Shown here in pieces: positions 44,789 to 60,479 of a stretch of DNA of 64,000 nucleotides. The translations under genes and the position numbers were made by a program. The notes below the pieces were generated by a model that worked only from the letters and a program-made list of their open reading frames with translations, made no database searches and had not been told where the DNA came from. Position 1 is the first letter of the stretch, and the number at the start of each line of letters is the position of its first letter. Where the stretch lies: sequence record OR844650.1. One strand, written 5' to 3'.

Positions 44789-45175
44789 CTAATCTTTCCA
44801 TTTAATAGGATACTCCTTTCCTTGTACTATATATGACAAAATCCATCCGTAATGAATAGGATGATTTTTATCTGAATCAGGAATAAAATATAAAGCTGTA
44901 CTTGGATTATGACTGAATAAATCTTTATTGTCAAATGTAAAATGTGATAATATAATTTTCCTTGTACTTGGACGAATAACATTCTTAACACTGAACTCTG
45001 TTCCTTTGTATTTCTCCGAGAATTCAAATAATGCATCTGTAATTAAATCACTGAACTCTTGGATTACAAAATTCTGATAAAATGCATTAATCTCTTTTAA
45101 CTCTGTATACAATTCACTTCTGGTATTCAAAAGGAATATTACTTGTTTAAGATCCTGTACTATTGTTGGGTTCAT
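44789..45175 (-). CDS. family C-like protein
   Basis: SEKYKGTEFSV after long helix. Confidence 0.65.
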   Translation of the reverse strand: MNPTIVQDLKQVIFLLNTRSELYTELKEINAFYQNFVIQEFSDLITDALFEFSEKYKGTEFSVKNVIRPSTRKIILSHFTFDNKDLFSHNPSTALYFIPDSDKNHPIHYGWILSYIVQGKEYPIKWKD

Positions 45176-45410
45176 ATTTGTTTATCTCATTATGTACCTT
45201 AAGCATAAAAATTTGCATATGAATTTTTTGTTCAAGGTGCTTGATAAATTTCTGTACTGTATCTTCTTGATCTTTTGTACCAAGATAAAATAACATATTA
45301 AATTCAGATAATCTCAGAGAGAAATCTTCCTCTCCCCCTCGTAAACAAAAATCCCTGTACTTTGAAGCGTACAATAAAGAATCTACCTTTTTATATATTT
45401 GGGTCTGCAT
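45147..45410 (-). CDS. family B small protein
   Basis: FYLGTKDQED. Confidence 0.75.
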   Translation of the reverse strand: MQTQIYKKVDSLLYASKYRDFCLRGGEEDFSLRLSEFNMLFYLGTKDQEDTVQKFIKHLEQKIHMQIFMLKVHNEINKYEPNNSTGS

Positions 45411-45595
45411 TGTATCTCCATTTTCAAGGACCATATGAGCTTATCAACGCATTGATCCTGTGCTATTGTCCCTAGATAAAATAATACATCAAAATCTGAT
45501 ATTTTGATATTAAAAGGATCGGTGTGTACATTTTTAATAAACTCCCTGTACTTCATTTCATATGCATTAGGTATATTCTTATATGTCAATTTCAA
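45383..45595 (-). CDS. family B small protein
   Basis: FYLGTIAQDQ. Confidence 0.75.
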   Translation of the reverse strand: MKLTYKNIPNAYEMKYREFIKNVHTDPFNIKISDFDVLFYLGTIAQDQCVDKLIWSLKMEIQCRPKYIKR

Positions 45596-46596: not shown

Positions 46597-46906
46597 TAGG
46601 CTCCTGTTTAGATTCTTTCATTAGTACTATCATCTTATGTACTAATGGCATAGGAAACTCTAAATCCCATACTAATGATTCCTGAAAGTATTCCTCTGGT
46701 GATAAAGTACTTAAATCTTTAATATCAACGTGCTTGTATATTTTATTTTCGTAATTAACAAATGATATATATAAATCACTAACATAAGAATCATAGGTAA
46801 TTGTGAATGGCTTACCCTTGTAATCCATTACATCTCTACATAGACTACTTTTGATATATGTATGTTCAAATGATTTATATACCTTGAGTTGTATATTAGT
46901 TTTCAT
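46562..46906 (-). CDS. family A protein (short type)
   Basis: DLSTLSPEEYFQESLVWD. Confidence 0.75.
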   Translation of the reverse strand: MKTNIQLKVYKSFEHTYIKSSLCRDVMDYKGKPFTITYDSYVSDLYISFVNYENKIYKHVDIKDLSTLSPEEYFQESLVWDLEFPMPLVHKMIVLMKESKQEPNGDYEEHTVEY

Positions 46907-47138
46907 ATTTCTCTTTATTAGCTTGTTTGGTTTTATAGTGAATTAAATCTATTAATGTAATCAAGTACAACGTCAAATAGTACTCTTGTTGATCTGTACC
47001 TAATGATACAAAGAACTTGTGCTCATAGATTAAAACCTGTTTCTCTTCAAATGGACATTTAATCCTCTGTATAGGCTTAAGTAAATGATAGTACTTATTA
47101 AATCTATGATACATTTCTAGTTCTGTCAGTACTTTCAT
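46896..47138 (-). CDS. family B small protein
   Basis: SLGTDQQEY. Confidence 0.75.
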   Translation of the reverse strand: MKVLTELEMYHRFNKYYHLLKPIQRIKCPFEEKQVLIYEHKFFVSLGTDQQEYYLTLYLITLIDLIHYKTKQANKEKYEN

Positions 47139-47139
47139 A

Positions 47140-47361
47140 TTAAACACATACTCCATTAGCTGTAGCATCACGTAAAGCTGTCAAATACTTCTGTACGGCT
47201 TGCTCTTGCTTATTTGTACCTAAAAGTATATACATCCATAATTCACTGTAATGTACATCTTGTGTATAAGGGTTGTTGTAACTTTTTGATAATATAGCAT
47301 CAAATTCAGATGCATGAACCCTTGTGAACTTAAGAATATCTTGTTGTGATATGATTCTCAT
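47140..47361 (-). CDS. family B small protein
   Basis: LLGTNKQEQ. Confidence 0.75.
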   Translation of the reverse strand: MRIISQQDILKFTRVHASEFDAILSKSYNNPYTQDVHYSELWMYILLGTNKQEQAVQKYLTALRDATANGVCV

Positions 47362-47573
47362 ATCTTTTCCTGTACAATCTGTATAAGAATACCTATGTGT
47401 GAATTAACAGTTCTCTCTTGATGCTGTGTTCCTAAGAGTGTCAGTACTATCATATCTGAACGCAAAAGATTTTTTTCAAGTTCACTTATATCAGTTCTTG
47501 AATCAAGTGCCATATATTTGTGATTATTCTTCCTGAATAGTGCCAAGTACTCTTGGTTTGATATTATCTTCAT
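47358..47573 (-). CDS. family B small protein
   Basis: LLGTQHQER. Confidence 0.75.
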   Translation of the reverse strand: MKIISNQEYLALFRKNNHKYMALDSRTDISELEKNLLRSDMIVLTLLGTQHQERTVNSHIGILIQIVQEKI

Positions 47574-47785
47574 AGTTTACTTTGAATTTCCATTAAAAGT
47601 GCTCTAATATGCTCATTGACAAATCTCTCTTGGGAATCTGTGTCTAGGGTGAGAAGCATTCTTAAATCGGAACCTCTGATGGTATATTCTAAATCATTCT
47701 TTGATTCTCGCATAAGTTTCTGAAAGGATGAGAAGTGTAATCCCATGAGTTCAATGTATTCTGCTGTTCCTAGTGGTTTTGGCAT
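47570..47785 (-). CDS. family B small protein
   Basis: TLDTDSQER. Confidence 0.75.
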   Translation of the reverse strand: MPKPLGTAEYIELMGLHFSSFQKLMRESKNDLEYTIRGSDLRMLLTLDTDSQERFVNEHIRALLMEIQSKL

Positions 47786-47997
47786 TTTAGTTCAATCGCT
47801 CGTTTAAGTGTATTAATATAATCATTAATATAGCATTCTTGATAGTTAGTCCCTAGTGTAGCTTGAACATAGATTTCATTTCTCTTAATAATTTTATCCA
47901 TATCTGGTATATCTGATGTGTTAATAACAAACAACTTCAAAAACAATCCATTTATAATTGTTAGGTATTCTTCGTCGGTAATCATTCGCATTTGCAT
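47770..47997 (-). CDS. family B small protein
   Basis: TLGTNYQEC. Confidence 0.75.
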   Translation of the reverse strand: MQMRMITDEEYLTIINGLFLKLFVINTSDIPDMDKIIKRNEIYVQATLGTNYQECYINDYINTLKRAIELKCQNH

Positions 47998-48203
47998 CTT
48001 CTCAGTACTGATTCTTTAAGTTCATCAATGTAGTACTCTACATATTCTTCTTGTAGGTTTGTTCCGAGATGTAACAGTACTCTTAAATCTGCTCTCAGTA
48101 CTTCTTTATCATCTTCATCTATATCAGACAGTGTTATGTTTAAGAATTTACTTGAACTCTCTATAAGTAATATTACTGAATCACCTTTGCTTAAAATTTT
48201 CAT
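47982..48203 (-). CDS. family B small protein
   Basis: HLGTNLQEE. Confidence 0.75.
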   Translation of the reverse strand: MKILSKGDSVILLIESSSKFLNITLSDIDEDDKEVLRADLRVLLHLGTNLQEEYVEYYIDELKESVLRRCKCE

Positions 48204-48411
48204 AATCTCTTTTTGCTTTCCTCGCCAAAAGGTACATATACGATTCTTCGTATTGTGCTTGGTAGTTTGTGTTTAAGAGTCGAAACAACTTCTGTTCTGC
48301 TAGAACTAGTTGCTTATCTTCATAACAACGATAGCGTATCAACTTTTTGTATTCGATGTTGATTACATCCATTACTATAAGCCCATGTTCATCATCTGTC
48401 AAGTGTTTCAT
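48181..48411 (-). CDS. family B small protein
   Basis: LLNTNYQAQ. Confidence 0.75.
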   Translation of the reverse strand: MKHLTDDEHGLIVMDVINIEYKKLIRYRCYEDKQLVLAEQKLFRLLNTNYQAQYEESYMYLLARKAKRDYENFKQR

Positions 48412-48649
48412 GCATTTTTCTTTTTCTTATATGTTTAGTTAAAAGGTATATTAGTTTTCTATTGTATTCTTCCTGATAGTTTGTTCCTAATAGTGCAAGA
48501 AGTTTTGCTTCAACTAAAGCTAATTGACGTTCTTCAAATGTGTGTTCCAGTATGTACTTGGGGTTTGATTTTTTAGCGTAAGCACTATTAGTCTTCATTA
48601 CAATCTTATGATATTCATTAGCAGTTAGGATTTTTAAATACTTGATCAT
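48392..48649 (-). CDS. family B small protein
   Basis: LLGTNYQEE. Confidence 0.75.
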   Translation of the reverse strand: MIKYLKILTANEYHKIVMKTNSAYAKKSNPKYILEHTFEERQLALVEAKLLALLGTNYQEEYNRKLIYLLTKHIRKRKMHETLDR

Positions 48650-48869
48650 GTATCTTTTCCTTTATAGAGAATTTAAGATATCGAAGCATACTTTCAATGT
48701 AATACTCTTGTCTGTCAGTGCCAAGAAAGTACATGAGTTGAATGTATAAAACTTCTGCACTCCTTTCCGCTGGAGACTTGTTTGTGTCGTTTGGAAGTTG
48801 ATTTGTATGTTTTCTTGATTTAATTAGTCGTTCTTTTAACTCATCGTCTGTTAAGTATTTCATTTGCAT
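48618..48869 (-). CDS. family B small protein
   Basis: FLGTDRQEY. Confidence 0.75.
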   Translation of the reverse strand: MQMKYLTDDELKERLIKSRKHTNQLPNDTNKSPAERSAEVLYIQLMYFLGTDRQEYYIESMLRYLKFSIKEKIHDQVFKNPNC

Positions 48870-49095
48870 TTACTTTTTCCTTAATAGTGATTTTAAGATA
48901 TCTAATCATACGTGCAACATATTCCTCTTGTCTATCAGTTCCCAGAAGATATGGTAGTGATTGGAATAATACTTCTGCACTCCTTTCTGCTGGGGTTTGG
49001 TTTAGGTCAATTGGACGTTTATTGGTATATCTCTTGGCACGAACTAATCTCTCGACGTATTCATTATAGGTTAAGTATATCATTTCATTTTGCAT
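48841..49095 (-). CDS. family B small protein
   Basis: LLGTDRQEE. Confidence 0.75.
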   Translation of the reverse strand: MQNEMIYLTYNEYVERLVRAKRYTNKRPIDLNQTPAERSAEVLFQSLPYLLGTDRQEEYVARMIRYLKITIKEKVNANEILNRR

Positions 49096-49315
49096 TTACT
49101 TTTTCCTTAATACTCATTATAAGATGTTCAATCATATTTTGAACCATAAATTCTTGTTTATCAGTTCCAAGAACGTATGGTAGCTTCTGAAACAATACAT
49201 TTGCAGATACTTCAGATATTGATTGATTTGGAACGAACTTAAGAGTAATGTTTTTGGTTTTTAACATCTTCTCTTGAAATTCTTCATTCGTTAAGTATAT
49301 CATTTCATTTTGCAT
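49085..49315 (-). CDS. family B small protein
   Basis: VLGTDKQEF. Confidence 0.75.
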   Translation of the reverse strand: MQNEMIYLTNEEFQEKMLKTKNITLKFVPNQSISEVSANVLFQKLPYVLGTDKQEFMVQNMIEHLIMSIKEKVNAK

Positions 49316-49531
49316 TTACATTCTCTCATATATATTTTGGGTTAAAAGGTCAATCCAGATTTCCACATATCGTTGTTGGTGTTGCGTCCCTAACAGTACA
49401 CCCAACTTAGCTTCACACTCTAATAACAATCTGGTTTTGTATGGTAGACTTTGGAATCCTATAGTAGCATCTAATTTGGTAATTGCATAGTTGATTCGGA
49501 TGAATCTTTCTTGCAATGTGATGTTGATCAT
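49316..49531 (-). CDS. family B small protein
   Basis: LLGTQHQQR. Confidence 0.75.
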   Translation of the reverse strand: MINITLQERFIRINYAITKLDATIGFQSLPYKTRLLLECEAKLGVLLGTQHQQRYVEIWIDLLTQNIYERM

Positions 49532-49791
49532 TTCTTAGTACACCTCAGTGGTTGGGTCATTTGATGAAAGTACAGCTTACCTCTGATTTCCAGTAGCAAC
49601 TCCGCGATTAAGCGATTTACTTCTGTATCTTGATAGTTTGTTCCTAAGAATACACCCATCTTTAACTCACGCATCATAATCATTTTCTTACTGTGTTGAA
49701 TTTCTGGGTTGTGATAGATTGTATTACGTTTGTGCGTAATTTTTGTCATACGCTCGGTATATTCATCTTTACTTAAATTGATCATTTGCAT
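49528..49791 (-). CDS. family B small protein
   Basis: FLGTNYQDT. Confidence 0.75.
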   Translation of the reverse strand: MQMINLSKDEYTERMTKITHKRNTIYHNPEIQHSKKMIMMRELKMGVFLGTNYQDTEVNRLIAELLLEIRGKLYFHQMTQPLRCTKK

Positions 49792-49820
49792 GTTAATTAC
49801 CCTTACATTTATTTTCAATA

Positions 49821-50060
49821 CTATTCTTTAGTTTGTAGATATAGTTTTCTTCCAATGTATCTCTTAAGTGCGATTATGTATTCATCTACATAATACTCCT
49901 GATAGTTTGTTCCTATGAATGCACCCACCTTTAACTCAAGTTTCATAATCATCTTATTTCCGTGTTTAATGACTTCTCCGTGATGGATTTCATTAAGTCC
50001 AGGTGCAATTTTTACCAGGCGTTCTTTATATTTTGCTTGAGATAATTTAATCATTTTCAT
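49821..50060 (-). CDS. family B small protein
   Basis: FIGTNYQEY. Confidence 0.75.
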   Translation of the reverse strand: MKMIKLSQAKYKERLVKIAPGLNEIHHGEVIKHGNKMIMKLELKVGAFIGTNYQEYYVDEYIIALKRYIGRKLYLQTKE

Positions 50061-50061
50061 G

Positions 50062-50292
50062 TTAATTACCCTTACATTTATTTTCAATACTATTCATGAG
50101 TTCTATAAGATAGTTTTCTACCTTACCTTCCTGATAGTTAGTCCCTAGGAAGTTGCACAACACGGCTTCTATGATTTTGATTTTCCTGATATCAGGCTTC
50201 AATCTTTTGTTATTGAATATTTGAATCCTTATATCTCTGGATGCATTTAAACGTTTTTGATATTCATGGTAAGTTAAATTAATCATTTTCAT
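50062..50292 (-). CDS. family B small protein
   Basis: FLGTNYQEG. Confidence 0.75.
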   Translation of the reverse strand: MKMINLTYHEYQKRLNASRDIRIQIFNNKRLKPDIRKIKIIEAVLCNFLGTNYQEGKVENYLIELMNSIENKCKGN

Positions 50293-50507
50293 TTACGTTT
50301 AACCTCTCGCTGGAGGGCATCAATTAACATCAGTACAGCATTCTCTTGATAGTTTGTTCCTAAGACTGAAAGCATCTTTATCTCATTTACTAAAATCAAC
50401 TTCTTTGAGGGTTCAATAATGTGACTATCATAAACGGCCTTACGTGCTGGATAAGTTTTCGCCAGTATAACATAAAATTCGTCTTTACTTAAATTAATCA
50501 TTTGCAT
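50289..50507 (-). CDS. family B small protein
   Basis: VLGTNYQEN. Confidence 0.75.
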   Translation of the reverse strand: MQMINLSKDEFYVILAKTYPARKAVYDSHIIEPSKKLILVNEIKMLSVLGTNYQENAVLMLIDALQREVKRK

Positions 50508-50716
50508 TTACTTTTAACCTCTTTCTGTAGAGCGTCAATCCATAGATCCACATACATTTGTTGATAGTTTGTGCCTAAGAGTGTTAAGACATAAAGTTCA
50601 GTTATCATTATATACTTTCGTTCTTCGGCAATTCTTTTATCCTTTTGAATCATTCTCCTTCTGATTCCACAGGTTTGTAGAAGCTTAACATATTCGAAAC
50701 CTATTAATTTTCTCAT
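50498..50716 (-). CDS. family B small protein
   Basis: LLGTNYQQM. Confidence 0.75.
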   Translation of the reverse strand: MRKLIGFEYVKLLQTCGIRRRMIQKDKRIAEERKYIMITELYVLTLLGTNYQQMYVDLWIDALQKEVKSKCK

Positions 50717-50928
50717 TTTAAACTCACCGACTTCAGACGTAAGCTGCTTAACCATGCGTCTATGTAGATACTTTGATAGTTTGTCCCAATGAAGAGTAAT
50801 AGCTTCATTTCAGCTATTATAACACATCGGTCCGCTTCTGCAATAGAATTATCTAAAAAAGTCCACGAGACTTTTCCTTGTATAGTTCTTAACCTATTGT
50901 AATACTCATGCTCAGTCAGGATTTTCAT
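50713..50928 (-). CDS. family B small protein
   Basis: FIGTNYQSI. Confidence 0.75.
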   Translation of the reverse strand: MKILTEHEYYNRLRTIQGKVSWTFLDNSIAEADRCVIIAEMKLLLFIGTNYQSIYIDAWLSSLRLKSVSLK

Positions 50929-51163
50929 TCTCACGTCTCCATATCTCGGTTCTAATGTGTTGGCAGTGTGCATCGATGAACATATCTATAGATTTGGTAA
51001 TTGCTGTTTTATCAGTGCCTGTCATCAGTACAAGCATCTCTGCCTCACTATGAATTAAACGCATGATATCATAGGGTAATATTTCAGATACAGTGTCATA
51101 GTGTTTCTGTGCCAGTGTCTGTAATAGTTTACAATACATTTTGTGATTTAGTCTGTGTCGCAT
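50912..51163 (-). CDS. family B small protein (degenerate)
   Basis: MTGTDKTAI. Confidence 0.65.
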   Translation of the reverse strand: MRHRLNHKMYCKLLQTLAQKHYDTVSEILPYDIMRLIHSEAEMLVLMTGTDKTAITKSIDMFIDAHCQHIRTEIWRRENENPD

Positions 51164-51399
51164 TGTTTATTCCATTCTCTTCTGGCTTGACGGGTTTTAT
51201 CTGATATTTCGTTTCTCAATGCAGCGATATATCGTAGAGTGAACAGTTCTTGATAGTTAGTCCCTATGAATTTATTAAGATATACATCAGCGTTGACGAT
51301 ATCAGCTTCACGGGAATTATAAAGTTTATTGTTCGTGCGGAGGGTGTTTAGAAGAGAGAAGAGGGCAGTCTGATACTCCACTCCTGATAAAATCTTCAT
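51148..51399 (-). CDS. family B small protein
   Basis: FIGTNYQEL. Confidence 0.75.
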   Translation of the reverse strand: MKILSGVEYQTALFSLLNTLRTNNKLYNSREADIVNADVYLNKFIGTNYQELFTLRYIAALRNEISDKTRQARREWNKQCDTD

Positions 51400-51640
51400 G
51401 TTTTGTGAGCAAATAATCATCTAGTTTATCCTGTATAACATTCGTTAATTGTTCGATATATTCTGTGCAAAACTTATCTTGATATTGAGTCCCCATAAAG
51501 TACAGCAACCATAGCTCATTAACTTTAGCTCGCATTTGGTTCCATGTAAGGCTGGGGTCACCGTAGACTATCCTTGTGATGGGGGTTAGTTTACGAATTA
51601 TAGTTTCAAATTCATCATCAGTTAAGTGTTTCATTTGCAT
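51326..51640 (-). CDS. family B small protein
   Basis: FMGTQYQDK. Confidence 0.75.
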   Translation of the reverse strand: MQMKHLTDDEFETIIRKLTPITRIVYGDPSLTWNQMRAKVNELWLLYFMGTQYQDKFCTEYIEQLTNVIQDKLDDYLLTKHEDFIRSGVSDCPLLSSKHPPHEQ

Positions 51641-51849
51641 TTGTCCCTTATTAAATCAGTGAGGGCAACTATGTGTGCAATAACATACTCTTCCTGGAAG
51701 TTCGTCCCCAGTACAGCCATCATGCGTTTATCGGTGGTGTTTATCCTGTGTTCCCTTACACATAAACCTTCTTTGTGAGGAAGTGTAAAATATTTGTTTA
51801 TTGCAGCTATGATAATTTTATTCTTCTCTATATTACTTAAATGTTTCAT
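51631..51849 (-). CDS. family B small protein
   Basis: VLGTNFQEE. Confidence 0.75.
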   Translation of the reverse strand: MKHLSNIEKNKIIIAAINKYFTLPHKEGLCVREHRINTTDKRMMAVLGTNFQEEYVIAHIVALTDLIRDKCK

Positions 51850-52058
51850 AGTTTACTCTTAATGTAGTTCTGAAGTTCAATTAAGTATTTCCCTACATAA
51901 TACTCCTGAAAGTCTGTATCCAAAAATGCACCCATAAGTAAATCCTTCTCCATTGCCCTTGATAAGTTAAGGTCTGCATTTGAAAGGTATATAAGTAATA
52001 TTTCAGTCTGGACAGAATTAAAACGTTTCTTATATTCTTCAGGTGTTAATATAATCAT
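51846..52058 (-). CDS. family B small protein
   Basis: FLDTDFQEY. Confidence 0.75.
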   Translation of the reverse strand: MIILTPEEYKKRFNSVQTEILLIYLSNADLNLSRAMEKDLLMGAFLDTDFQEYYVGKYLIELQNYIKSKL

Positions 52059-52270
52059 AATTTGCTCCTGATGTATTTCTCAAGAGATGACAAATACTTT
52101 TCCTCATAATACTCCTGATAGTCTGTTCCCAAGAATGCACCCAAAAGTATTTCATTTTCCAATACCTCGGCTAAGTTTAAATCAGACGTCTCTTCGTATA
52201 TTATGAGGATTTCAAGTTGTCTGGCAGCGATGCGTTCAGTATATTGATATGAGTTTTCTATAATAATCAT
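52055..52270 (-). CDS. family B small protein
   Basis: FLGTDYQEY. Confidence 0.75.
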   Translation of the reverse strand: MIIIENSYQYTERIAARQLEILIIYEETSDLNLAEVLENEILLGAFLGTDYQEYYEEKYLSSLEKYIRSKL

Positions 52271-52476
52271 ATTTTACTCTTAATATCTTCTATTAAAAAT
52301 CGAATCCATTCTTCAACATAATCTTCCTGATGGTTTGTGTTCAGTACAGCCAACATGCGGATCTCTGCTCTTGCAACTTCAATTTCAGTTTTAGGCAGGT
52401 CTTTGCTGATATCCACCATTAAGTCCATGTATTTCAAGATAAGACCGTATGATTGGGTTCGTGTTATAGTTTTCAT
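52267..52476 (-). CDS. family B small protein
   Basis: VLNTNHQED. Confidence 0.75.
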   Translation of the reverse strand: MKTITRTQSYGLILKYMDLMVDISKDLPKTEIEVARAEIRMLAVLNTNHQEDYVEEWIRFLIEDIKSKI

Positions 52477-52673
52477 TGTTTCCTCGTGGACAATATTTTA
52501 TTTTTCAATGTATCCATATATTGCCACACCCATCTACCCTGATAGTTTGTTCCCAATGTAATCAAAAGGTATAACTCCATTCGTTCTACGTGTGTGTCTG
52601 TGTTGTAAATCTTTACGTAGTTTTTACGTAACAGTGATTGATATTCTTCTTTATTTAAAATACGCATTTTCAT
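52473..52673 (-). CDS. family B small protein
   Basis: TLGTNYQGR. Confidence 0.75.
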   Translation of the reverse strand: MKMRILNKEEYQSLLRKNYVKIYNTDTHVERMELYLLITLGTNYQGRWVWQYMDTLKNKILSTRKQ

Positions 52674-52867
52674 AGTTTACTCGTTATATCTTCAATTAAA
52701 TACCAAATCCAATCGTTGACATACCTTTCCTGAAAGTTAGTTCCAATGAATAGTGCCATAATTAATTCACGCTTATAGGCAATACCACGGTCATGGGACT
52801 TATACATTATCATAGCCATGTTATTGATAAGTCTTTCGTGGTGCTGTTCTTTAGTTAAAATACGCAT
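52670..52867 (-). CDS. family B small protein (first of the array)
   Basis: FIGTNFQER; GGGAG RBS before MRILTK. Confidence 0.75.
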   Translation of the reverse strand: MRILTKEQHHERLINNMAMIMYKSHDRGIAYKRELIMALFIGTNFQERYVNDWIWYLIEDITSKL

Positions 52868-52897
52868 AGGGACTCCCTTAAAATTAATATCAATCAT

Positions 52898-52925
52898 ATT
52901 TTATACGATTCATATAAAAAGTCAA
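52898..52925 (-). promoter_or_regulatory. putative sigma70 promoter for the family B array
   Basis: TTGACT-16-TAAAAT. Confidence 0.5.
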
Positions 52926-53022
52926 TAACATTTTATTCGTAATACCCCTTTATCGAAGTCGCTAAGGTTACCCGCCCTTTAGCCCCCTACGCATTTTGCC
53001 ATAGTCCAATCCCTTTTATTTC

Positions 53023-53088
53023 AAAAAAGTCAAGGGATTACCTATGCATTTTTTTAACGCATAATTTTAAAAACGCCTTGACTTTTTT
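53023..53088. repeat. 13-bp perfect inverted repeat at the module boundary
   Basis: AAAAAAGTCAAGG (53023-53035) / CCTTGACTTTTTT (53076-53088), inner TATGC/GCATA. Confidence 0.75.
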
Positions 53089-53116
53089 CTGAATCAGTAC
53101 TAGATCCCTTTACGCA

Positions 53117-53326
53117 TTAATCCTTCGTTACGCTAACGATTATCTGTGTATCCCCGTAGTCCTGCCATACTTCCACGCCATCGGTCGCCCTGGTTAGTCG
53201 TGCTGTCATCTGCTTAATGGTCTTAGGCTTTAGTGGAACCTGTTGCAGTACTGTACGCATAGCATCATTGACGTTATCATGTACGCCTGCAATAGTACCT
53301 AGAACGCTGTATACTGTATAGAACAT
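53117..53326 (-). CDS. early-region hypothetical protein
   Basis: AGGAGG RBS, GC hairpin AGGCCGC/GCGGCCT in the leader. Confidence 0.7.
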   Translation of the reverse strand: MFYTVYSVLGTIAGVHDNVNDAMRTVLQQVPLKPKTIKQMTARLTRATDGVEVWQDYGDTQIIVSVTKD

Positions 53327-53394
53327 ATGTATGCCCTCCTGATATAGTTAAGGCCGCTACAAGGCGGCCTATGATGTTTGGTGATGTGTAACGC

Positions 53395-53796
53395 TTACAG
53401 TCCTAAGATAGTGCGTGCTTCGTTACGTTCCGTACACAGCTGCATGATGTGAGCAAGTAAGTCCTTGCTAATGTATCCGGTGTTCATAGCTTCACGAATA
53501 GATACATCATAAGCACCGAACCCCGTGCGAACGATACGCACATCATTCAGGTTAGTATTATAGATACCGCCGAGATCAACGGCTTCGAATACTACATCAA
53601 CAGAATATTCATTGTTGCCATCGTGGAAGTTTTCCAGTGCAATAGTATTGGATACCGCCCAACGTTTGCAGTTTCCAATGATGCGGCACTGTTCCGGTTG
53701 GATAGTACCATTACTTACAGCGTACTCCAGTGCATCTTTACCGAAAGTCCGAGCCAGTACTAAAACGTCAGCGAAGGAATTGATTGAGAAGGTCAT
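53395..53796 (-). CDS. early-region hypothetical protein
   Basis: Start moved to MTFSIN, downstream of a promoter-stem-loop cassette. Confidence 0.75.
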   Translation of the reverse strand: MTFSINSFADVLVLARTFGKDALEYAVSNGTIQPEQCRIIGNCKRWAVSNTIALENFHDGNNEYSVDVVFEAVDLGGIYNTNLNDVRIVRTGFGAYDVSIREAMNTGYISKDLLAHIMQLCTERNEARTILGL

Positions 53797-53885
53797 GATA
53801 AAACTCCTTAATTTAGGAGGGAGAACCATTTCCCCCTCTCTATGTAAAACATTATACTTGATTCTAAGTACTATGCAAGTACTTT

Positions 53886-54218
53886 TTACATTTTAATACC
53901 TGGATTCAGATAGCGGTGAGAACCATATTCTGGATCGGTTTCGGTCCAGTACTGTAAATCGATAGTACCTTTCGCGTTAATCTTGTCTACCAGCTTATTC
54001 ATCTTAGCGTATACTACGTCAGCATCGATGCGTTTAAAGCCAGTAGCTTTAGTGAAGTAGTAGTGATTTGCTTCACTATCATTAAGGATATACCGAGCAC
54101 CGTTTGCAGTCTGTGCGATAATGATTGAGTATTCTACTTCCCGATCCAGACCGTCGATGAATACAGATGAAACATTGGTACGGATGAAAGCTTTAACGAT
54201 AGCGATTGAAGTACTCAT
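53886..54218 (-). CDS. early-region hypothetical protein
   Basis: AGGAG RBS, own promoter at ~54272-54300. Confidence 0.75.
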   Translation of the reverse strand: MSTSIAIVKAFIRTNVSSVFIDGLDREVEYSIIIAQTANGARYILNDSEANHYYFTKATGFKRIDADVVYAKMNKLVDKINAKGTIDLQYWTETDPEYGSHRYLNPGIKM

Positions 54219-54368
54219 TTTGAATCTCCTAACTTTGTGGGCCGTCGCACCATTGCCGCCCTACGAGATACATTATTGCAGTACTGATATACTTTGTCAA
54301 TACTTTTTTTATTAATAGTTTTCACCCCACCAGCAGATAGTTACTCACCGTTATTAACTATATATTTT

Positions 54369-54452
54369 AGATACACTCCTGCACCCAGTGGGCTAGTTTT
54401 TGTCTATGCGTATATAATAGCAAAGGGACTGACCGGAGTCAATCCCTTTTTT
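54369..54452. repeat. repeat element R2 copy 1 (type A)
   Basis: AGATACAC..GCACCC..TGGG..TATATAATAGCAAAGGGACTGACCGGAGTCAATCCCTTTT. Confidence 0.85.
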
Positions 54453-54464
54453 TATTCTTTTTTG

Positions 54465-54665
54465 TTAGATGATTCTCCAATCTTCTACGATCATGGTAAG
54501 ATAACGGACCATCGATTCAAGTGATTCGAATTCCCGATAGTCTGCCGCTCCACCAGCGGTACAAGTACAGCCGATTAAACCATTTTGTAATTCCTTAATC
54601 TGTACATCGATAAGGTTGGCTTTAGCTTCTTTCAGTACTTCAACCAGGGCGATAGCGATAGACAT
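54465..54665 (-). CDS. early-region hypothetical protein
   Basis: GGAG RBS after cassette. Confidence 0.7.
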   Translation of the reverse strand: MSIAIALVEVLKEAKANLIDVQIKELQNGLIGCTCTAGGAADYREFESLESMVRYLTMIVEDWRII

Positions 54666-54754
54666 AATGTTTTACTCCAAACTATTGACGGGAGAACTAT
54701 TCCCCCGCTCTATGTAAAACATTATACATTACTTGTTAGTACTGTCAAATAGTT

Positions 54755-55012
54755 TTATGAAATATCTTCGATGTAGTCGGCCCATTTCATTTTTTCAGTA
54801 CTGTCAATGGCTACCGGATTATTTGGATCAAACCATTCACCATTACCGCAGTACATACCAACGGCTACGGTTTTATAGCCATCCTGGGCCGTACTCCACG
54901 ACATTGCACGATAGATATGGCCTTTAACTGGTTGCAGTACTGGTAACGTTTTATGGTCTTCTACGTAGGCCATAGCTTGAGGATTTACCCGATATTGTGT
55001 GAATTGTTCCAT
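54755..55012 (-). CDS. early-region hypothetical protein
   Basis: AAGGG RBS, TTGACA promoter at ~55041-55069. Confidence 0.7.
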   Translation of the reverse strand: MEQFTQYRVNPQAMAYVEDHKTLPVLQPVKGHIYRAMSWSTAQDGYKTVAVGMYCGNGEWFDPNNPVAIDSTEKMKWADYIEDIS

Positions 55013-55088
55013 GATGTTTCCCCTTGTAGTTAGTAAAGTTATTACATCAGTACTATCAAGCTATGTCAATAGTACTGAAATAAAACTT

Positions 55089-55313
55089 TTAGATTAGATT
55101 ATTGATGCCGTTGATGGTAGACTCGCTTTCTTCTTTCTCCCATTGGCGGTAGTACTTCCATGCTTCATGATATGTGGCGATTAGTTCATCTTTTTGATCC
55201 TGAGTACATGCCAGTACTGAATCACGGTGAGCGGTGTTATAGATAGAATCGAATGATTTCTTCTCTTCTGCCAGGTTAGCTACTTCCCGCATCAGTTCAT
55301 CAAAGTTAGCCAT
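55089..55313 (-). CDS. early-region hypothetical protein (helical, acidic)
   Basis: AAGGAG RBS after cassette. Confidence 0.7.
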   Translation of the reverse strand: MANFDELMREVANLAEEKKSFDSIYNTAHRDSVLACTQDQKDELIATYHEAWKYYRQWEKEESESTINGINNLI

Positions 55314-55380
55314 TTTATTACTCCTTTTAGTGGGGGAGGATATCTCCCCCTATGCAAAACATTATACTTTGTTTTAGTTA

Positions 55381-55644
55381 TTATGCAAGTACTTTTTTCA
55401 TATAAAGATTATATTCTACACCGCCGTAACCTTCTACGATGATATGTTTTGCGTTATCACGTTTGCACATAGTGAAACCGTTGTTGATGTGTTCTGCATT
55501 TTCCAGGGCGACATCACCGATAGCGGCACATACGGCACTAATAACAGTATTCCGCAAAGTACTGGTATCATTAGCGGTCATAGTAGTTTGCAGTACTACG
55601 TTGTCGTATACGTGTGCATTGATAGTGATTTCGATAGTGTTCAT
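55381..55644 (-). CDS. early-region hypothetical protein
   Basis: AGGAG RBS after cassette. Confidence 0.7.
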   Translation of the reverse strand: MNTIEITINAHVYDNVVLQTTMTANDTSTLRNTVISAVCAAIGDVALENAEHINNGFTMCKRDNAKHIIVEGYGGVEYNLYMKKVLA

Positions 55645-55730
55645 GGTGTATCTCCTGGACTGGCGGGAGAACTATTCCCCCGCTCTATGTAAAACATTAT
55701 ACGTTAATCTAACTACAATGCAAGTACTTT

Positions 55731-55922
55731 TTAAATTTTATTTCCGATATAGTCCGGTCTATTCTTTTCGGTCATACGCTTTGCTAATGTTTGCATATGG
55801 CTTATTGCGTTTAATGTGTCTTCCTCCAGGGATGAATCAACATAATCAGGATCATTCTTCACCTTGCAATGATTATGATAGCGTAGTACTGCCAGTACTT
55901 TTTTAACTTCTTCTACTGTCAT
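55731..55922 (-). CDS. early-region hypothetical protein
   Basis: ATGA-coupled to the upstream gene. Confidence 0.65.
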   Translation of the reverse strand: MTVEEVKKVLAVLRYHNHCKVKNDPDYVDSSLEEDTLNAISHMQTLAKRMTEKNRPDYIGNKI

Positions 55923-56191
55923 AATAAGTACCCCACTTCGTTAGCTTTCAGGTTAGTATCAATCATCAGTGGATTTTTGTAGTTCACAAAACGATTAGTT
56001 TTCTCGATAGCGAATCCCATATAATCCAGCTTACTAACAGTACATTCATTCTTAAAAACTTCTTTCGCTGCATCGATGGCTGATTGCATGGATAACCGAC
56101 CATCTAAATTAATGTTTCCAAATGATCCACCAGCAGAAGTAGGATTACCGTTCATATCTTTAATGATCATAGTAGCGGAGTAGCTGGACAT
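55919..56191 (-). CDS. early-region hypothetical protein
   Basis: AAGG RBS after cassette. Confidence 0.7.
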   Translation of the reverse strand: MSSYSATMIIKDMNGNPTSAGGSFGNINLDGRLSMQSAIDAAKEVFKNECTVSKLDYMGFAIEKTNRFVNYKNPLMIDTNLKANEVGYLL

Positions 56192-56278
56192 AATTTTGTT
56201 TCCTTTTAGTATCGGGGAGAACTATTCTCCCCTTGATGTAAACTATTATACAGTACTGATATACTTTGTCAAATACTT

Positions 56279-56686
56279 TTATTCGCCCATATAGATTAGA
56301 TTATCATCGCCTACATAGGGATCGCAAACGTTGATTTCTTCGCAGTACTTAGTGAATACATCGCCATAGTGACCTAAACCACGATCCCAAAAACCAGTTC
56401 CGTGACCTTCGCGGGTAAGGAACAGATCATGACCAGCTTGCTCATAACCGTAATCAATAAACATACCGCGAACTACTTCCAGATCATTACCGTGTTTCTC
56501 AATGAAGCGAGAACATGCAATCACCGCCGCTTGACGTGCTTCATCAGATAACTCATAATCTTCCAGGTAATCGCCGTTATCATTATGTACAGTACTGAAT
56601 TGCATAGCTTCAATGTAAGCTACAACCATTGCAGCATGATTTTTATCGTTAGTGATGTTCCGAGCGAGATTAGTAGTAGTAGACAT
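56279..56686 (-). CDS. conserved phage hypothetical protein (GHDxxLTRxGHGxGFWDR motif)
   Basis: Motif recalled as widespread in phage early regions; function unknown. Confidence 0.7.
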   Translation of the reverse strand: MSTTTNLARNITNDKNHAAMVVAYIEAMQFSTVHNDNGDYLEDYELSDEARQAAVIACSRFIEKHGNDLEVVRGMFIDYGYEQAGHDLFLTREGHGTGFWDRGLGHYGDVFTKYCEEINVCDPYVGDDNLIYMGE

Positions 56687-56769
56687 GATTTTATTCCTTA
56701 TTGTATTGGGGAGAACTATTCTCCCCTTGATGTAAACTATTATACAGTACTGATATACTTTGTCAATAC

Positions 56770-56991
56770 TTAATTACGTTTAAAATGATATGTGCCTTTA
56801 TCATCCTGTACGCCCCACACTGATTTACCATCAACACCAGTGAAACCGGATTGTAATTCAATATGGAAACCATTATTATCAACTACAAAAACTTTTTTAT
56901 TTTCATCCCGATAACATTGATATTCTGAATCAACATTAAAGGCCGCATCATTCAGAAGATTGGAAGCGTAAATGCAAGTCATTGTAGTCAT
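56770..56991 (-). CDS. early-region hypothetical protein
   Basis: Start moved to MTTMTC after cassette. Confidence 0.7.
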   Translation of the reverse strand: MTTMTCIYASNLLNDAAFNVDSEYQCYRDENKKVFVVDNNGFHIELQSGFTGVDGKSVWGVQDDKGTYHFKRN

Positions 56992-57084
56992 GATTTTATT
57001 CCTTATTACCAGGGAGAACCATTTCCCCCTCTCTATGTAAAACATTATACTTGATTCTAAGTACAATGCAAGTACTTTTTATCA

Positions 57085-57204
57085 AATAGTTTTCAGTACT
57101 GAATACTTATATAATAGATACACTTCCGCACCCTATGGGTCAGTGAGTTATCTCTCAATGAATATATAATAGCAAAGGGACTGACCGGAGTCAATCCCTT
57201 TTTT
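57085..57204. repeat. repeat element R2 copy 2 (type B)
   Basis: AAATAGTTTTCAGTACT..AGATACAC..GCACCC..TCTCTCAATGAATATATAATAGCAAAGGGACTGACCGGAGTCAATCCC. Confidence 0.85.
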
Positions 57205-57212
57205 AATCTTTT

Positions 57213-57797
57213 TTATCGTGTTACCTTACTTGCTTCTACATCACGCTTTTTATAGTACTGATTCCAGATATTGCGGGTTAAACCGTAATCAAGTACTTTA
57301 ATAAGGCCGTTGCGATCCTGGCCGATATTCTGTTTTCTGATATCTCTTATCGTTAGTGTTGACAGTGTATCATCAACGTGTTGTAGTGCATCAGCAAAGC
57401 GGTGCTGGCGTTCAATTGCATTACGTTTAATATTGTACTTTAATTCGTTGCACGCGTTAACGTGCTTTACACTGCCTTTACTTGCAGTACTCAACCGATC
57501 CATAACGATAAACATATTATCAGGATCGCATAAATGCATATGCACCTTTGCAAAGTACTGTTTCAATTGAGGGCGGTCATAGTCTAAAAAATTCCATACC
57601 TTACATTCAGTTTCATTTTGTTCTACACCCGCATCACAATTGGCGACCTTAATCACTAACCGATCATTTAAAGCGAATACAATACGGGAAGAACCCGCAC
57701 CGATGATCTCCAGACCAGCTAACCGACAAGCTGAAAGGATCTCTTTGTTGGTTTCCATTTCTGACAGGGTACGGATGAATTTAGTATAATTACGCAT
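57213..57797 (-). CDS. minimal protein-kinase-fold protein (putative Ser/Thr kinase)
   Basis: GAGSSR loop, VIK Lys, EQNETE helix C, DIRKQN catalytic loop, LDYG; start moved to MRNYT after AAGGAG. Confidence 0.75.
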   Translation of the reverse strand: MRNYTKFIRTLSEMETNKEILSACRLAGLEIIGAGSSRIVFALNDRLVIKVANCDAGVEQNETECKVWNFLDYDRPQLKQYFAKVHMHLCDPDNMFIVMDRLSTASKGSVKHVNACNELKYNIKRNAIERQHRFADALQHVDDTLSTLTIRDIRKQNIGQDRNGLIKVLDYGLTRNIWNQYYKKRDVEASKVTR

Positions 57798-57828
57798 TGC
57801 ATGTTCTCCTTGAGTTAATGAAACTATC

Positions 57829-58071
57829 TTACAGTACTTTACTATCAATGGCAACCACTTTTTTCACACTAACCGCGTGAATCACTTCCTTAGTGTTTTT
57901 AGTACTGAATACTTTCGCTGTTCCTTGTTCTACTGCAATGCGATAACGACCGTTAACATCAACCATATTAATAAAGTCCGGTGTACTAAACCGAGTAGTA
58001 CGGCATTTCAGTACTGTTAACAGTTCCACCAGCGATGTAGTTTCTTTGATACGTTTTTCTAAAGTAATCAT
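57829..58071 (-). CDS. early-region hypothetical protein
   Basis: Start moved to MITLEK; promoter TTGACA-17-TACTAT. Confidence 0.65.
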   Translation of the reverse strand: MITLEKRIKETTSLVELLTVLKCRTTRFSTPDFINMVDVNGRYRIAVEQGTAKVFSTKNTKEVIHAVSVKKVVAIDSKVL

Positions 58072-58128
58072 TTTGTTTTCCCCGTGTTGGTATGTACATA
58101 TAGTACTAAAACATTTGAGTACTGTCAA

Positions 58129-58347
58129 TTAGATAATTGCATATTTCTTTAAAGATAATGCGTCTTGGGTTGGCTGATACTCAATGCCGTTACCGTTATC
58201 TACTTTAACTAATAAACCTTTGTCAATTAGTTTTTTAATAGTCCTTTGGCCTTGTTGAAAATTGGTAAAATGTGAATCATTACGAAAGGTATAACCGTGC
58301 TTAACTGCTTCATCAATAGTTTTCTTTTCGATTTTAGATAATTTCAT
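58129..58347 (-). CDS. small hypothetical protein (possible winged-helix)
   Basis: RTIKKLIDKGLLVK; start moved to MKLSK; promoter TTGACA-17-TATTAT. Confidence 0.65.
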   Translation of the reverse strand: MKLSKIEKKTIDEAVKHGYTFRNDSHFTNFQQGQRTIKKLIDKGLLVKVDNGNGIEYQPTQDALSLKKYAII

Positions 58348-58400
58348 TTTGTTTCTCCCGTGTTGGTATGTGTACATAATACTAAAACAATTGAGTACTG

Positions 58401-58655
58401 TCAACGTGATATTAGTTTTATTTTCTTATTATATTGTTGATGTTCATAAAGGTTTATCTTTCCTGTGTTCTCTATTACTATTCTGTTGTTAGTGTCTACA
58501 TCGATTACACGCAGTTTTCCGTTGCTTAACTTCCTTGGTAATAGGTTACCATTAATAAACTCATTAGCAAGCTGTACGGCCTTTGTGATGATTCTCTGTG
58601 GTGCTTTATAGTGTACCCGCAAGATATTATCTTTAGATAGTTGTACCTTAATCAT
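58401..58655 (-). CDS. small basic hypothetical protein
   Basis: AGGA RBS. Confidence 0.65.
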   Translation of the reverse strand: MIKVQLSKDNILRVHYKAPQRIITKAVQLANEFINGNLLPRKLSNGKLRVIDVDTNNRIVIENTGKINLYEHQQYNKKIKLISR

Positions 58656-58670
58656 TTTAGTTTATCCTAT

Positions 58671-58695
58671 AAAAAAGGCGGGAACTGATCCCGCC
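58671..58695 (-). terminator. rho-independent terminator
   Basis: GGCGGGA-ACTGA-TCCCGCC plus T6 on the minus strand. Confidence 0.75.
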
Positions 58696-58717
58696 GTGTT
58701 GTTAGTACTGCAAGTTA

Positions 58718-59113
58718 TTAGATAACCTGGCGGCGTTTACTGTATACTGTTACACGATTACCCTTACGGTCGTGTCGGATCTCTTTCTGGTTGCGAACCA
58801 GTTCACTTGGACGCTTAAGGTTTGCCAGGTGATCCGCGTGAGTCCAAGCGGTATGGTTTGTCTGTACTTTGATATCAGAATCAGCGATAAATTCATCTTG
58901 TGCGTTAAGTACTGCCGCCAGTAAATCCGCTCGTTTTAGTTCTGCTGCTGTTAGTACTGGCTCCGGTGAATTCACGATATCAGAGATTTCTTTGAACTGT
59001 ACGGCCCAGCGTTGACCTTTCGGTGCATCTTTGCCCATGTCTTTAAATGCTGCTCCTTCCTCGCGTGCAACAATACGGGCAGCTTCACGGGTAGCGTAGA
59101 ATTTAGTAATCAT
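58718..59113 (-). CDS. early-region hypothetical protein
   Basis: Promoter TTGACA-17-TATAAT at 59158-59186. Confidence 0.75.
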   Translation of the reverse strand: MITKFYATREAARIVAREEGAAFKDMGKDAPKGQRWAVQFKEISDIVNSPEPVLTAAELKRADLLAAVLNAQDEFIADSDIKVQTNHTAWTHADHLANLKRPSELVRNQKEIRHDRKGNRVTVYSKRRQVI

Positions 59114-59208
59114 GGTATACATCCTATTAGTTGAGTTAGTACTACAAGTTAGAGTCTATTATAAAGTACTATCTGGGCAATGTCAAATAGTACTTTAAAT
59201 GGATTCTA

Positions 59209-59532
59209 TTACATGTCTTTCTTACGTTTTACATCGTAGTAGCGAACTGTTATTTCTTTGTTAATCTCTTTTTCGATGCGGTGAATAACTTTTTCTTTCG
59301 GGTTGAAACCTATAACGGTTTCTTTAATGATCTCCAAGCCCGTGTATTCTCCTTGTGTACCGTAACCGTAAGTAAAGGTTTCATGTCCCAAGTCTTCCCA
59401 GCGGTCGCCAATTAACGCGGACACGTAGCAAGAGTGGTAAGTGTTACCGTTCCGATCAGTCCAGCGATTAACTTTAATGTCAAAGGAGGTTACAATTTTC
59501 AGTTCTACTTTCTGGGTAAGGATCATAGCCAT
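59209..59532 (-). CDS. early-region hypothetical protein
   Basis: After cassette. Confidence 0.7.
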   Translation of the reverse strand: MAMILTQKVELKIVTSFDIKVNRWTDRNGNTYHSCYVSALIGDRWEDLGHETFTYGYGTQGEYTGLEIIKETVIGFNPKEKVIHRIEKEINKEITVRYYDVKRKKDM

Positions 59533-59619
59533 TTTTATTTCTCTCTCTTTGTTAGGAGGGGAACCATTCCCCTCGCTTGATGTAAACTATTATACAGTAC
59601 TAAGATACTTTGTCAATAC

Positions 59620-59802
59620 TTATTTTTTGGAAAGTTTACGCATTAATTCTACGCTTTCTTGTGAACGTTTTGCTACCTGGCAAGCTGTATGGGCAGTAAA
59701 CATTTTTGTATAGTCTGACGCTTTGCCACCAAACCGAGCGGCACGTTCACGGGCACTTGGAACTAATACTATTTCTTTCTTGCAGATAGTGCACTTAGCC
59801 AT
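59620..59802 (-). CDS. small Cys/His protein (CxxC...HxxC)
   Basis: CTIC and HTAC; after cassette. Confidence 0.7.
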   Translation of the reverse strand: MAKCTICKKEIVLVPSARERAARFGGKASDYTKMFTAHTACQVAKRSQESVELMRKLSKK

Positions 59803-59889
59803 TTTAATTTCTCTCTTTTAGTTAGGAGGGGAACCATTTCCCCGCCTTGATGTAAACTATTATACAGTACTAAGATACTTTGTCAATAC

Positions 59890-60165
59890 TTAAGTATTGT
59901 AAATGTCGTGAATAGTGATAAAGTTTTTACGCCCGTAAACCTGTAAATCGGTATTAATGTAGTGCTTATCAAGTACATCCTCGACGCTTAACGCGGTGTC
60001 GTGAATATCTTCGTAGAATTGGGGATCTACAATCTTGCTTAAGTCATCCGGCGTTAACTTATCGTTAAGCCATTGAACCGCCTGGATATCTGCATCACGT
60101 TTCCATTGTTCCAGGTTAGTAGTCAGTACTTGCTCGATTTCGTTAGCTGTCAGTAGAATCCGCAT
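59890..60165 (-). CDS. early-region hypothetical protein
   Basis: AAGG RBS; promoter at 60199-60226. Confidence 0.7.
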   Translation of the reverse strand: MRILLTANEIEQVLTTNLEQWKRDADIQAVQWLNDKLTPDDLSKIVDPQFYEDIHDTALSVEDVLDKHYINTDLQVYGRKNFITIHDIYNT

Positions 60166-60233
60166 TTTAATGTTTCCTTATCAGTGGTTGATGTAAGTAT
60201 TATACTCGTTTACTTTCTATTGTCAAACTATTT

Positions 60234-60309
60234 TATCAGGGGAGTTTTTCGTATGTCTTACTCCTGGACTACTTAACGGGGTTACTTGTTTCGTTCCCCG
60301 TCCTGATGT
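60234..60309 (-). ncRNA. candidate ~75-nt three-way-junction sRNA
   Basis: Own promoter (TTGCAT-16-TATAAT at 60315-60342); ATCAGG/CCTGAT closes CGGGG/CCCCG and GGAGT/ACTCC stems; no start codon. Confidence 0.45.
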
Positions 60310-60354
60310 AAAACATTATACTTGATTCTAAGTACAATGCAAGTACTTTTTAAA

Positions 60355-60470
60355 AATAGTTTTCAGTACTAGCCACCAGCAAACAATAGATACATTTATG
60401 CACCCTGTGGGCTGATTTGTTTCTATGCGTATATAATAGCAAAGGGACTGACTGGAGTCAATCCCTTTTT
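60355..60470. repeat. repeat element R2 copy 3 (type A)
   Basis: Same core; ACTGACTGGAGTCAATCCC variant. Confidence 0.85.
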
Positions 60471-60479
60471 CAAATATTT

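Follow-up and report, generated by a model that had tools for sequence, protein, structure and literature searches.

Host-takeover or pre-early genes lie in or beside the terminal repeats of phage genomes in the terminal-redundancy module of SPO1 and the pre-early region of T5, and in large eukaryotic DNA viruses, as in the gene accordions of poxviruses, terminal tandem paralogs that vary in copy number and content are read as host-interaction genes. Jumbo phages are therapy candidates that are poorly understood, more than 80% of their genes being without a function. We describe here an array of 27 paralogous small genes (a01 to a27), with four dispersed copies, in a 64,000-nucleotide stretch of sequence record OR844650.1, the whole of which is referred to as the window. 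This stretch matches Escherichia phage ECO103 4-12-1 (OR844650), a 121Q/PBECO4-like Asteriusvirus, at 100% identity, and about 5% of the genes of this phage (31 of about 600) belong to this one uncharacterised family, which has a confident predicted fold and no solved relative.

Bacillus phage G has a zinc-ribbon family expanded to about 35 copies, which were proposed to give different sequence specificities (PMC7824862). About 10% of the proteins of phage RaK2 are paralogues (PMC3622015), phage CBB has 22 paralogous open reading frames (ORFs) (PMC5259590), and Asteriusvirus genomes differ in blocks of hypothetical or accessory genes (PMC13070987). The lineage-specific expansion of small proteins in giant viruses is already known, and what is new here is the family that makes up the array, its predicted fold, its size as an apparent single operon and its probable placement at the boundary of a terminal repeat. 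We found no paper in the literature that describes the array.

The expansion in phage G is similar in the high copy number of one small family in a giant phage, with function given by inference, but the array differs in encoding predicted three-helix bundles with no metal-binding Cys pattern, and in being one contiguous operon at a terminal-repeat boundary. The SPO1 and T5 modules also have many small genes behind strong host-type promoters at the long-repeat end of the genome, but those are unrelated genes with their own promoters, whereas the array appears to be one operon of 27 paralogs, and we found nothing in the sequences to relate the two. The poxvirus type of accordion is a conceptual analogy, with its tandem paralogs towards the end of the genome and its differences in copy number and content from one close relative to another, but the host domain, the proteins and the mechanisms are others, and the recent DNA-identical duplicates that an accordion requires are absent from the array.

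The array and its family

A profile hidden Markov model (HMM) was made from the 27 array ORFs and used to search every one of the window's 703 six-frame ORFs. The family members, with the dispersed copies named d1 to d4 and lengths in amino acids (aa), are as follows:

46896..52897, minus strand: array of 27 paralogous small genes, a01-a27, from ORF list, HMM, junctions and alignment
46896-47138/47171, minus strand: a01, end gene of the array
52670-52867/52897, minus strand: a27, end gene of the array
31583..31774 (HMM-matched ORF 31586-31789), minus strand: d1, 63 aa, with LGTQYQE; HMM E 5.5e-11
31752..31973 (HMM-matched ORF 31755-32015), minus strand: d2, 73 aa, with VGSNKQD; HMM E 2.3e-6
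45147..45434 (HMM-matched ORF 45150-45440), minus strand: d3, 95-aa ORF, with LGTKDQE; HMM E 3.9e-8
45383..45595 (HMM-matched ORF 45386-45619), minus strand: d4, 70 aa, with LGTIAQD; HMM E 4.8e-7 and phrog_4148 E 1.7e-6

Within the array the HMM matches exactly 27 ORFs, with E values from 1e-17 to 1e-27, a recovery that is far beyond chance. All 27 copies cover the profile end to end, and there is no broken copy within the window. A preliminary description of this DNA had noted 27 consecutive genes of one family and four additional copies at 31583, 31752, 45147 and 45383. Both observations hold, the array lying on the minus strand at 46896-52897 by ORF list and HMM and the four copies being matched with E values from 5e-11 to 2e-6, and no further member is found among the six-frame ORFs. 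The array ORFs are 66-104 aa long, or 64-102 aa when started at the conserved Met.

The genes are mostly joined by overlapping stop and start codons, as had been noted: 19 of the 26 junctions overlap, nine of them as 4-nucleotide (nt) ATGA overlaps and one by 1 nt. The other seven have gaps of 1-35 nt, and no internal gap exceeds 35 nt, so that from its layout the array reads as one tightly packed operon. A Shine-Dalgarno-like core precedes only 10 of the 27 starts, against a background of 15%, and most units thus probably depend on translational coupling.

The proteins have diverged considerably, with a mean pairwise identity of 25%, rising to 31% for neighbours and 58% at most. The isoelectric point (pI) ranges from 4.3 to 9.7 and is at least 8 in 17 members and below 6 in seven, the seven acidic members falling at 4.3-5.6, while the N-terminal part carries a net charge of between -3 and +7. 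In the LGTNYQE-type motif the T is invariant in the window, and the Q and one Leu are conserved in at least 90% of copies. The layout of conserved residues given in the preliminary description is otherwise as found, but the spacing is E-x-x-L-x-x-x-L-G-T, one residue longer than was noted.

With regard to other phages, the array is also 100% identical in EC22.5-2, and is 83-96% identical in other 121Q/PBECO4-like jumbo coliphages and in four Salmonella Asteriusvirus phages. In all, the array has matches in 36 phage records, and also in phage genomes contained in bacterial assemblies. Its genes are labelled as hypothetical proteins in all annotated records, although most of those of SHEFM2K are annotated as phrog 4148. 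That assignment agrees with our searches, in which seven array members matched PHROGs family phrog_4148 (function unknown) with E values from 2e-10 to 1e-26, the matches spanning profile positions 1-2 to 70-73 of 74, with phrog_28039 as a secondary family match. The array and phrog_4148 are one family, but the PHROGs entry gives no function, structure, tandem organisation, repeat position or variability.

A profile search of 1.84 billion representative proteins gave 74 representatives at E 1e-3 or better. All are 52-95 aa long, so in this set the domain is never part of a larger protein. Where a source is named, it is an Asteriusvirus phage, a 350-kb phage contig deposited as E. coli, or one of the Klebsiella phages K64-1 and phiKp_21; the remaining sources are metagenome contigs. 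In the Alcyoneusvirus RaK2 a 24-kb stretch contains at least 11 members, scattered in groups of 2-3. Twelve contiguous members and five scattered ones lie on a 101-kb metagenome contig, and a Logan contig of a distant phage (L010, 40.8 kb, 29% GC) has 11 members in small groups. The family is thus older than Asteriusvirus, and in that genus it has expanded into one contiguous array.

Some observations on individual members may be added. The d1 gene sits among a different family of 150-200-aa paralogs and is 92% identical to representative P0063, and d2 is the most divergent of the dispersed members, with its HMM match confined to the C-terminal half. Equivalents of d3 are present at the same relative place in SHEFM2K, 121Q, G17 and BF17. 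One L010 member lies inside a long run of tandem paralogs of 160-200 aa, a setting reminiscent of that of d1 and d2. A RaK2 ORF (L015 2153-2506) comprises the C-terminal half of the family domain (VGT..Q motif and helix 3) with an extension of about 60 aa, and is the sole case we have seen of the domain inside a longer ORF.

No transmembrane-like segment was found in any of the 31 members, which are predicted to be soluble, and each protein has 0-2 Cys residues with no metal-binding Cys pattern. There is no Pfam family common to the 27 array members at E values up to 5, and a profile search of the PDB with two alignments gave nothing meaningful. Individual hits were treated as noise: those in Pfam (DUF1374, DAM-like and others) are sub-threshold and confined to single members, each to a different family, and those to PADLOC defence models are isolated single-member hits at E 6e-4 or worse, each to a different model.

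Predicted fold and divergence among relatives

AlphaFold2 models were made for the basic member a14 from the paralog alignment (predicted local distance difference test, pLDDT, 96.2; predicted template modelling score, pTM, 0.81) and for the most acidic member, a24, from a 73-sequence alignment (pLDDT 97.9, pTM 0.83). Both predict an up-down-up three-helix bundle, with helices at about residues 6-25, 31-45 and 52 to 70 or beyond. The predicted helices are 15-25 residues long and form an antiparallel bundle, not a compact helix-turn-helix. In both models there is a one-residue bridge between residue 2 and residue 49, the invariant Thr, and the N-terminal MK(I)L strand is predicted to be clipped onto the LGT turn.

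The conserved residues in 99 non-redundant members are M1, L4, T/S5, E8, Y9, E40, L43, L47, G48, T49, N50, Q52, E53, V56, Y59, I60, L63, I67 and K70, and among these G48, T49, Q52 and L63 are kept in 91-97 of the 99, which come from many phages. The conserved hydrophobic positions show helical periodicity. At the predicted starts of helices 1 and 3, T/S5-x-x-E8 and T49-x-x-Q52 look like N-terminal capping boxes, a reading that draws on DSSP strings and general knowledge. As the conserved residues are those of the core and of cap-like motifs, the fixed turn motif is most simply explained as structural.

Conservation is limited to core positions and the turn. Variable positions occur throughout the three helices, and those that vary between paralogs also vary between orthologs (r = 0.68). 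The proposal of one fixed scaffold with diversified surfaces is supported, by the confident three-helix models and by the confinement of conservation to core and turn. The related claim of a fixed turn with a variable helix 1 is right with regard to the turn and to the variation in charge, but too narrow, as non-core positions vary in all three helices.

Foldseek searches of the PDB with the two models gave nothing at E below 1, the best E values being 4.8 and 1.1, and a search of BFVD found only the family itself. The best-shaped matches, for the second model, are FAT and MIT helix bundles, with a template modelling score of about 0.48, and are non-significant. These peptide-binding proteins are similar in being antiparallel bundles of long helices of about the same size, but the E values are 1.1-9, the probabilities at most 0.57 and the root mean square deviations as high as 14 A, the sequences are not similar, and the likeness is one of shape only. 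Membership of the helix-turn-helix families (Cro/XRE-type and others) was also considered and is not supported, there being no Pfam match at E 5 or better, no PDB sequence match and no fold match at E below 1. In the profile and Foldseek searches we found no characterised family that explains the array, phrog_4148 itself having no assigned function.

The pooled ratio of nonsynonymous to synonymous substitution (dN/dS) for array orthologs, in comparisons with seven relatives, is 0.29-0.43, as against 0.14-0.27 for ten flanking genes, with dN and dS both raised in the array relative to the flanks. To judge from these rates, each copy is under purifying selection, and the alleles are older or have been exchanged. 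At these values the array consists of real, selected genes and not pseudogenes.

Copy number varies among the relatives, with about 19 copies in Turkey5, 23 in 121Q, 27 in SHEFM2K, BF17 and Salmonella phage SD-15_S21 as in the window phage, 28 (contiguous) in fEgEco12 and 29 in G17 and WPEC3. Partial or split copies number about 0-3 per array in SHEFM2K, G17, BF17, 121Q, the Salmonella phage and Turkey5, and 121Q lacks an ortholog for five of the window slots. The relatives keep a collinear gene order, and 27 ortholog-like groups, defined by 60% identity or more and three or more distinct sequences, are maintained.

Superimposed on this collinearity is a mosaic of slots and half-genes, seen in 121Q, G17, BF17, WPEC3 and the Salmonella phage. 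In SHEFM2K and G17 slots a17 and a18 have an identity of only 61-74%, while the slots on either side are at 100%; in 121Q these two slots reach 97-100%. In BF17 the N-terminal half of a17 is 47% identical and the C-terminal half 89%, and there are a09|a10 chimeras in 121Q and WPEC3. The extreme case is Turkey5, which has 95% nucleotide identity to the window up to position 53,090, 71% in the gap beside the array, and almost nothing across the array itself; 14 of its 16 full-length members are less than 50% identical to any window member. The array is, on these alignments, the sharpest point of divergence between phages that appear otherwise 95% identical.

The suggestion in the preliminary description that the array is maintained by gene-accordion recombination is only weakly supported. 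In its favour are the copy number of 19-29 among relatives, the a09|a10 chimeras and the half-gene mosaics. However the units have a mean identity of only 25%, Tandem Repeats Finder detects no DNA-level tandem repeat in the array, and the slots persist as collinear ortholog lineages. The longest exact DNA run shared between units has a median of 9 nt and is 26-30 nt for the best true pairs, larger runs between neighbouring units having been disregarded because they arise artificially where ORF coordinates overlap. Codon choice at the conserved Leu, Gly, Thr and Gln is scrambled, even within the motif. The units are ancient and lack the DNA identity needed by ongoing unequal recombination, which is why the accordion is only partly supported. 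As far as the sequences allow us to judge, the dominant visible process is the exchange of divergent alleles between phages and not ongoing expansion and contraction.

Position in the genome and possible roles

The ends of fEgEco12 have been confirmed by PhageTerm and restriction digests, with a direct terminal repeat of 20,993 bp (PMC13070987), and in our own check the right end of the fEgEco12 record matches up to position 20,993. This position lies in a 249-bp gap between g056 and g057, the latter being the first array gene (start 21,091). The boundary segment aligns at 88% identity to window 53,358-52,559, which places the boundary at about 52,965. By homology to fEgEco12 the array probably begins about 100 bp inside the unique DNA beside the left terminal repeat, and it would be the first transcription unit of the unique DNA, transcribed away from the genome end. 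The two segments upstream of the array are:

52898..53116, minus strand: 220-bp intergenic gap, containing the promoter-like site, the ribosome-binding site and the homolog of the repeat end
53117..64000, minus strand: homolog of the left direct terminal repeat, not of the family, by homology to fEgEco12 and to the repeat side of Turkey5

There is a promoter-like TTGACT-16-TAAAAT at 52925-52898 on the minus strand, matching the consensus at 10 of 12 positions, and an AAGGGAG ribosome-binding site ahead of the ATG at 52867. A scan of the repeat homolog (52,800-64,000) found 59 promoter-like sites where 38.6 +/- 6.8 were expected from shuffles, including nine perfect 12/12 TTGACA-16/17-TATAAT sigma70 sites, all on the minus (coding) strand and about one per small gene. 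The array was correctly described as lying just downstream of an early-type region, and that region is rich in sigma70 promoters.

In phAPEC6 the virion proteome comprises 62 proteins by mass spectrometry, and the array genes, gp467c-gp489c, are absent from it (PMC7247149, Table 1), with the proviso that small proteins can escape mass spectrometry. The idea that the array encodes virion or packaged proteins is unsupported, given this absence.

The array encodes a selected family of soluble, apparently non-virion, single-domain proteins on a new-looking three-helix scaffold, carried in what reads as one operon at the inner edge of the repeat and hypervariable between close relatives. The reading that we prefer, and offer tentatively, is that it provides an early panel of diversified small binders, soluble and not part of the virion, aimed at host or competitor targets. 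Early expression by the host polymerase, binding activity and protein targets in host or competitor are all inferred, and can be suggested only with caution. Host RNA polymerase would transcribe the 27 genes as a single operon, either starting at the promoter-like site (52925-52898) or reading through from the terminal-repeat region with its many promoters, or both, and translation would be largely by stop/start coupling, delivering the whole panel early in infection. Each paralog would keep the scaffold, show a different surface and be kept by selection as its own lineage, and from this combination of shared scaffold, different surfaces and selected lineages each may be expected to bind a different partner or partner variant. 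The array would then be a panel of host-takeover or counter-defence binders, its contents swapped between related phages as cassettes. Its hypervariable content fits a host-handling role, without proving one.

It is also conceivable, though we think it rather unlikely, that the panel is a combinatorial library, in which each three-helix paralog neutralises its own target among host immunity and housekeeping proteins, or its own allele of such a target, with all delivered at once from the first operon of the unique DNA and with slots and half-genes re-assorted, so that array content would help decide which strains can be exploited. If so, the array would be to bacterial viruses what the terminal multigene families are to large eukaryotic DNA viruses, with a fold unseen in solved structures.

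Several points weigh against a panel of early binders. We found no sequence or fold kinship to any characterised anti-defence or host-takeover protein in Pfam, PHROGs, the PDB, Foldseek, BFVD or PADLOC, no dedicated anti-defence library having been searched. For the anti-defence inhibitors, decoys or hetero-oligomer subunits suggested in the preliminary description, no profile, fold or literature link to a characterised function was obtained. No hypervariable patch and no dN/dS above 1 was detected; the surfaces seem to have drifted in a general way on a stable scaffold, a pattern that would also fit roles not involving conflict, and the fact that each slot has long been retained speaks against a very fast arms race. 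The putative sigma70 promoter proposed for the array is present as a promoter-like site, but the pattern is non-significant, with 55 such sites in the region against 59.6 expected. We found no Asteriusvirus transcriptome or infected-cell proteome in the literature, and the early timing is thus inferred from position and promoter-like sequences only.

Among the alternatives, we think it unlikely that these are small nucleic-acid-binding proteins, acting as specific transcription factors or coating phage DNA or RNA, with the paralogs differing in sequence specificity. The pI of at least 8 in 17 of the 27 members would suit such a role, as would the conserved polar residues T49, N50, Q52, E53 and K70 at the start of and along helix 3, and a jumbo phage in which small putative DNA binders have expanded greatly offers a precedent (PMC7824862). 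TetR-type regulators are among the weak top Foldseek hits (E 4.8-8, probability at most 0.15), but all the Foldseek hits are non-significant and the better matches of the second model are to the peptide binders FAT and MIT. With regard to DNA binding the overall spread of pI, 4.3-9.7, is ambiguous. Seven members are acidic, with pI 4.3-5.6, no helix-turn-helix or other DNA-binding Pfam family matches any of the 27 members at E up to 5, and the predicted antiparallel bundle of long helices is not a compact helix-turn-helix. It seems improbable, too, that the paralogs co-assemble into one hetero-oligomeric intracellular structure, such as a scaffold or compartment, with operon co-translation setting the stoichiometry. 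One operon with translational coupling at 19 of 26 junctions would give the co-expression needed, and the common scaffold has one conserved edge in the N-terminal strand and LGT turn. However a fixed assembly should constrain surfaces more than is seen, and it is difficult to reconcile with a copy number of about 19-29, with the loss of single slots (five without an ortholog in 121Q), with a Turkey5 set that is almost entirely different, and with RaK2, where the family occurs only in scattered groups of 2-3. The proteins are also undetected in virions.

A panel for competition between phages or mobile elements, by superinfection exclusion or interference with co-infecting relatives, shares its evidence (early position, hypervariability and cassette-like exchange) with the panel of binders that we prefer, and the divergence is sharpest between phages that share hosts. 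However nothing points specifically to it, and the retention of the family in Klebsiella RaK2-like phages and metagenomic relatives with different content fits either; we regard this, like co-assembly, as improbable. Least credible is that the array is evolutionary debris, a set of duplicated ORFs without function that drift neutrally. The family has no known function, its constraint is looser than that of the flanks and occasional partial or split copies occur in relatives, at about 0-3 per array, but all 27 copies in the window are intact and full length, and phages of Escherichia, Salmonella and Klebsiella retain the orthologs of individual slots. A dN/dS well below 1, and a motif held at the protein level while synonymous sites are scrambled, largely refute it.

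If the proteins do bind host targets, as in the reading that we prefer, the array would amount to a natural library of small inhibitors in compact form and would mark strain specificity. Were they instead DNA binders or parts of an assembly, the array would still be among the largest tandem paralog sets reported in phage. Annotators also gain a profile, together with a structural model, for proteins that now bear only the label hypothetical protein.

Other elements of the window

The repeat homolog encodes two proteins with recognisable domains and a possible third:

58401-58655, minus strand: ParE-like toxin-domain protein, Pfam E 6e-11
61456-61713, minus strand: DksA/TraR C4 zinc-finger protein, Pfam E 1e-11
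57213-57854, minus strand: weak protein-kinase-like ORF, sub-threshold, E 0.003

It also contains a repeated 38-nt element on the minus strand, consisting of a hairpin with a 12-bp stem that includes a TTGACT -35-like box, followed by TATTAT. There are copies at 54412-54449, 57164-57201 and 60431-60468 and a variant at 63915-63942, the three copies having at most one mismatch where none would be expected by chance. The element could be a regulated promoter or a combined terminator-promoter unit.

The GC content changes in a step near 52000, from 0.30-0.35 on the left, in the array and the other paralog regions, to 0.37-0.39 on the right, in the repeat homolog. The step coincides with the breakdown of conservation between Turkey5 and the window.

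The window has several other paralog families. A second family, found by BLASTP clustering, has about 10 members, with ORF starts at 23198, 27486, 29385, 35880, 36236, 36592, 36960, 37121, 46192 and 46562. The three ORFs directly downstream of the array (46562-46906, 46192-46596 and 45579-45896) have a common EE(Y/L)FQ(E/Y)SLV(W/H/Y)D motif, and the first two of these are in the second-family cluster, while 45579-45896 has the motif but was not clustered by BLASTP. A third family adjoins d1 and d2 and has nine members of 147-186 aa, with ORF starts at 26598, 27814, 31033, 32481, 33546, 33976, 34464, 34904 and 35376. There are smaller families at 8382-9516 (four members), 42469-43886 (three) and 57829/58129 (two), and altogether 54 of the 162 ORFs picked in the window are in paralog families detectable by BLAST.

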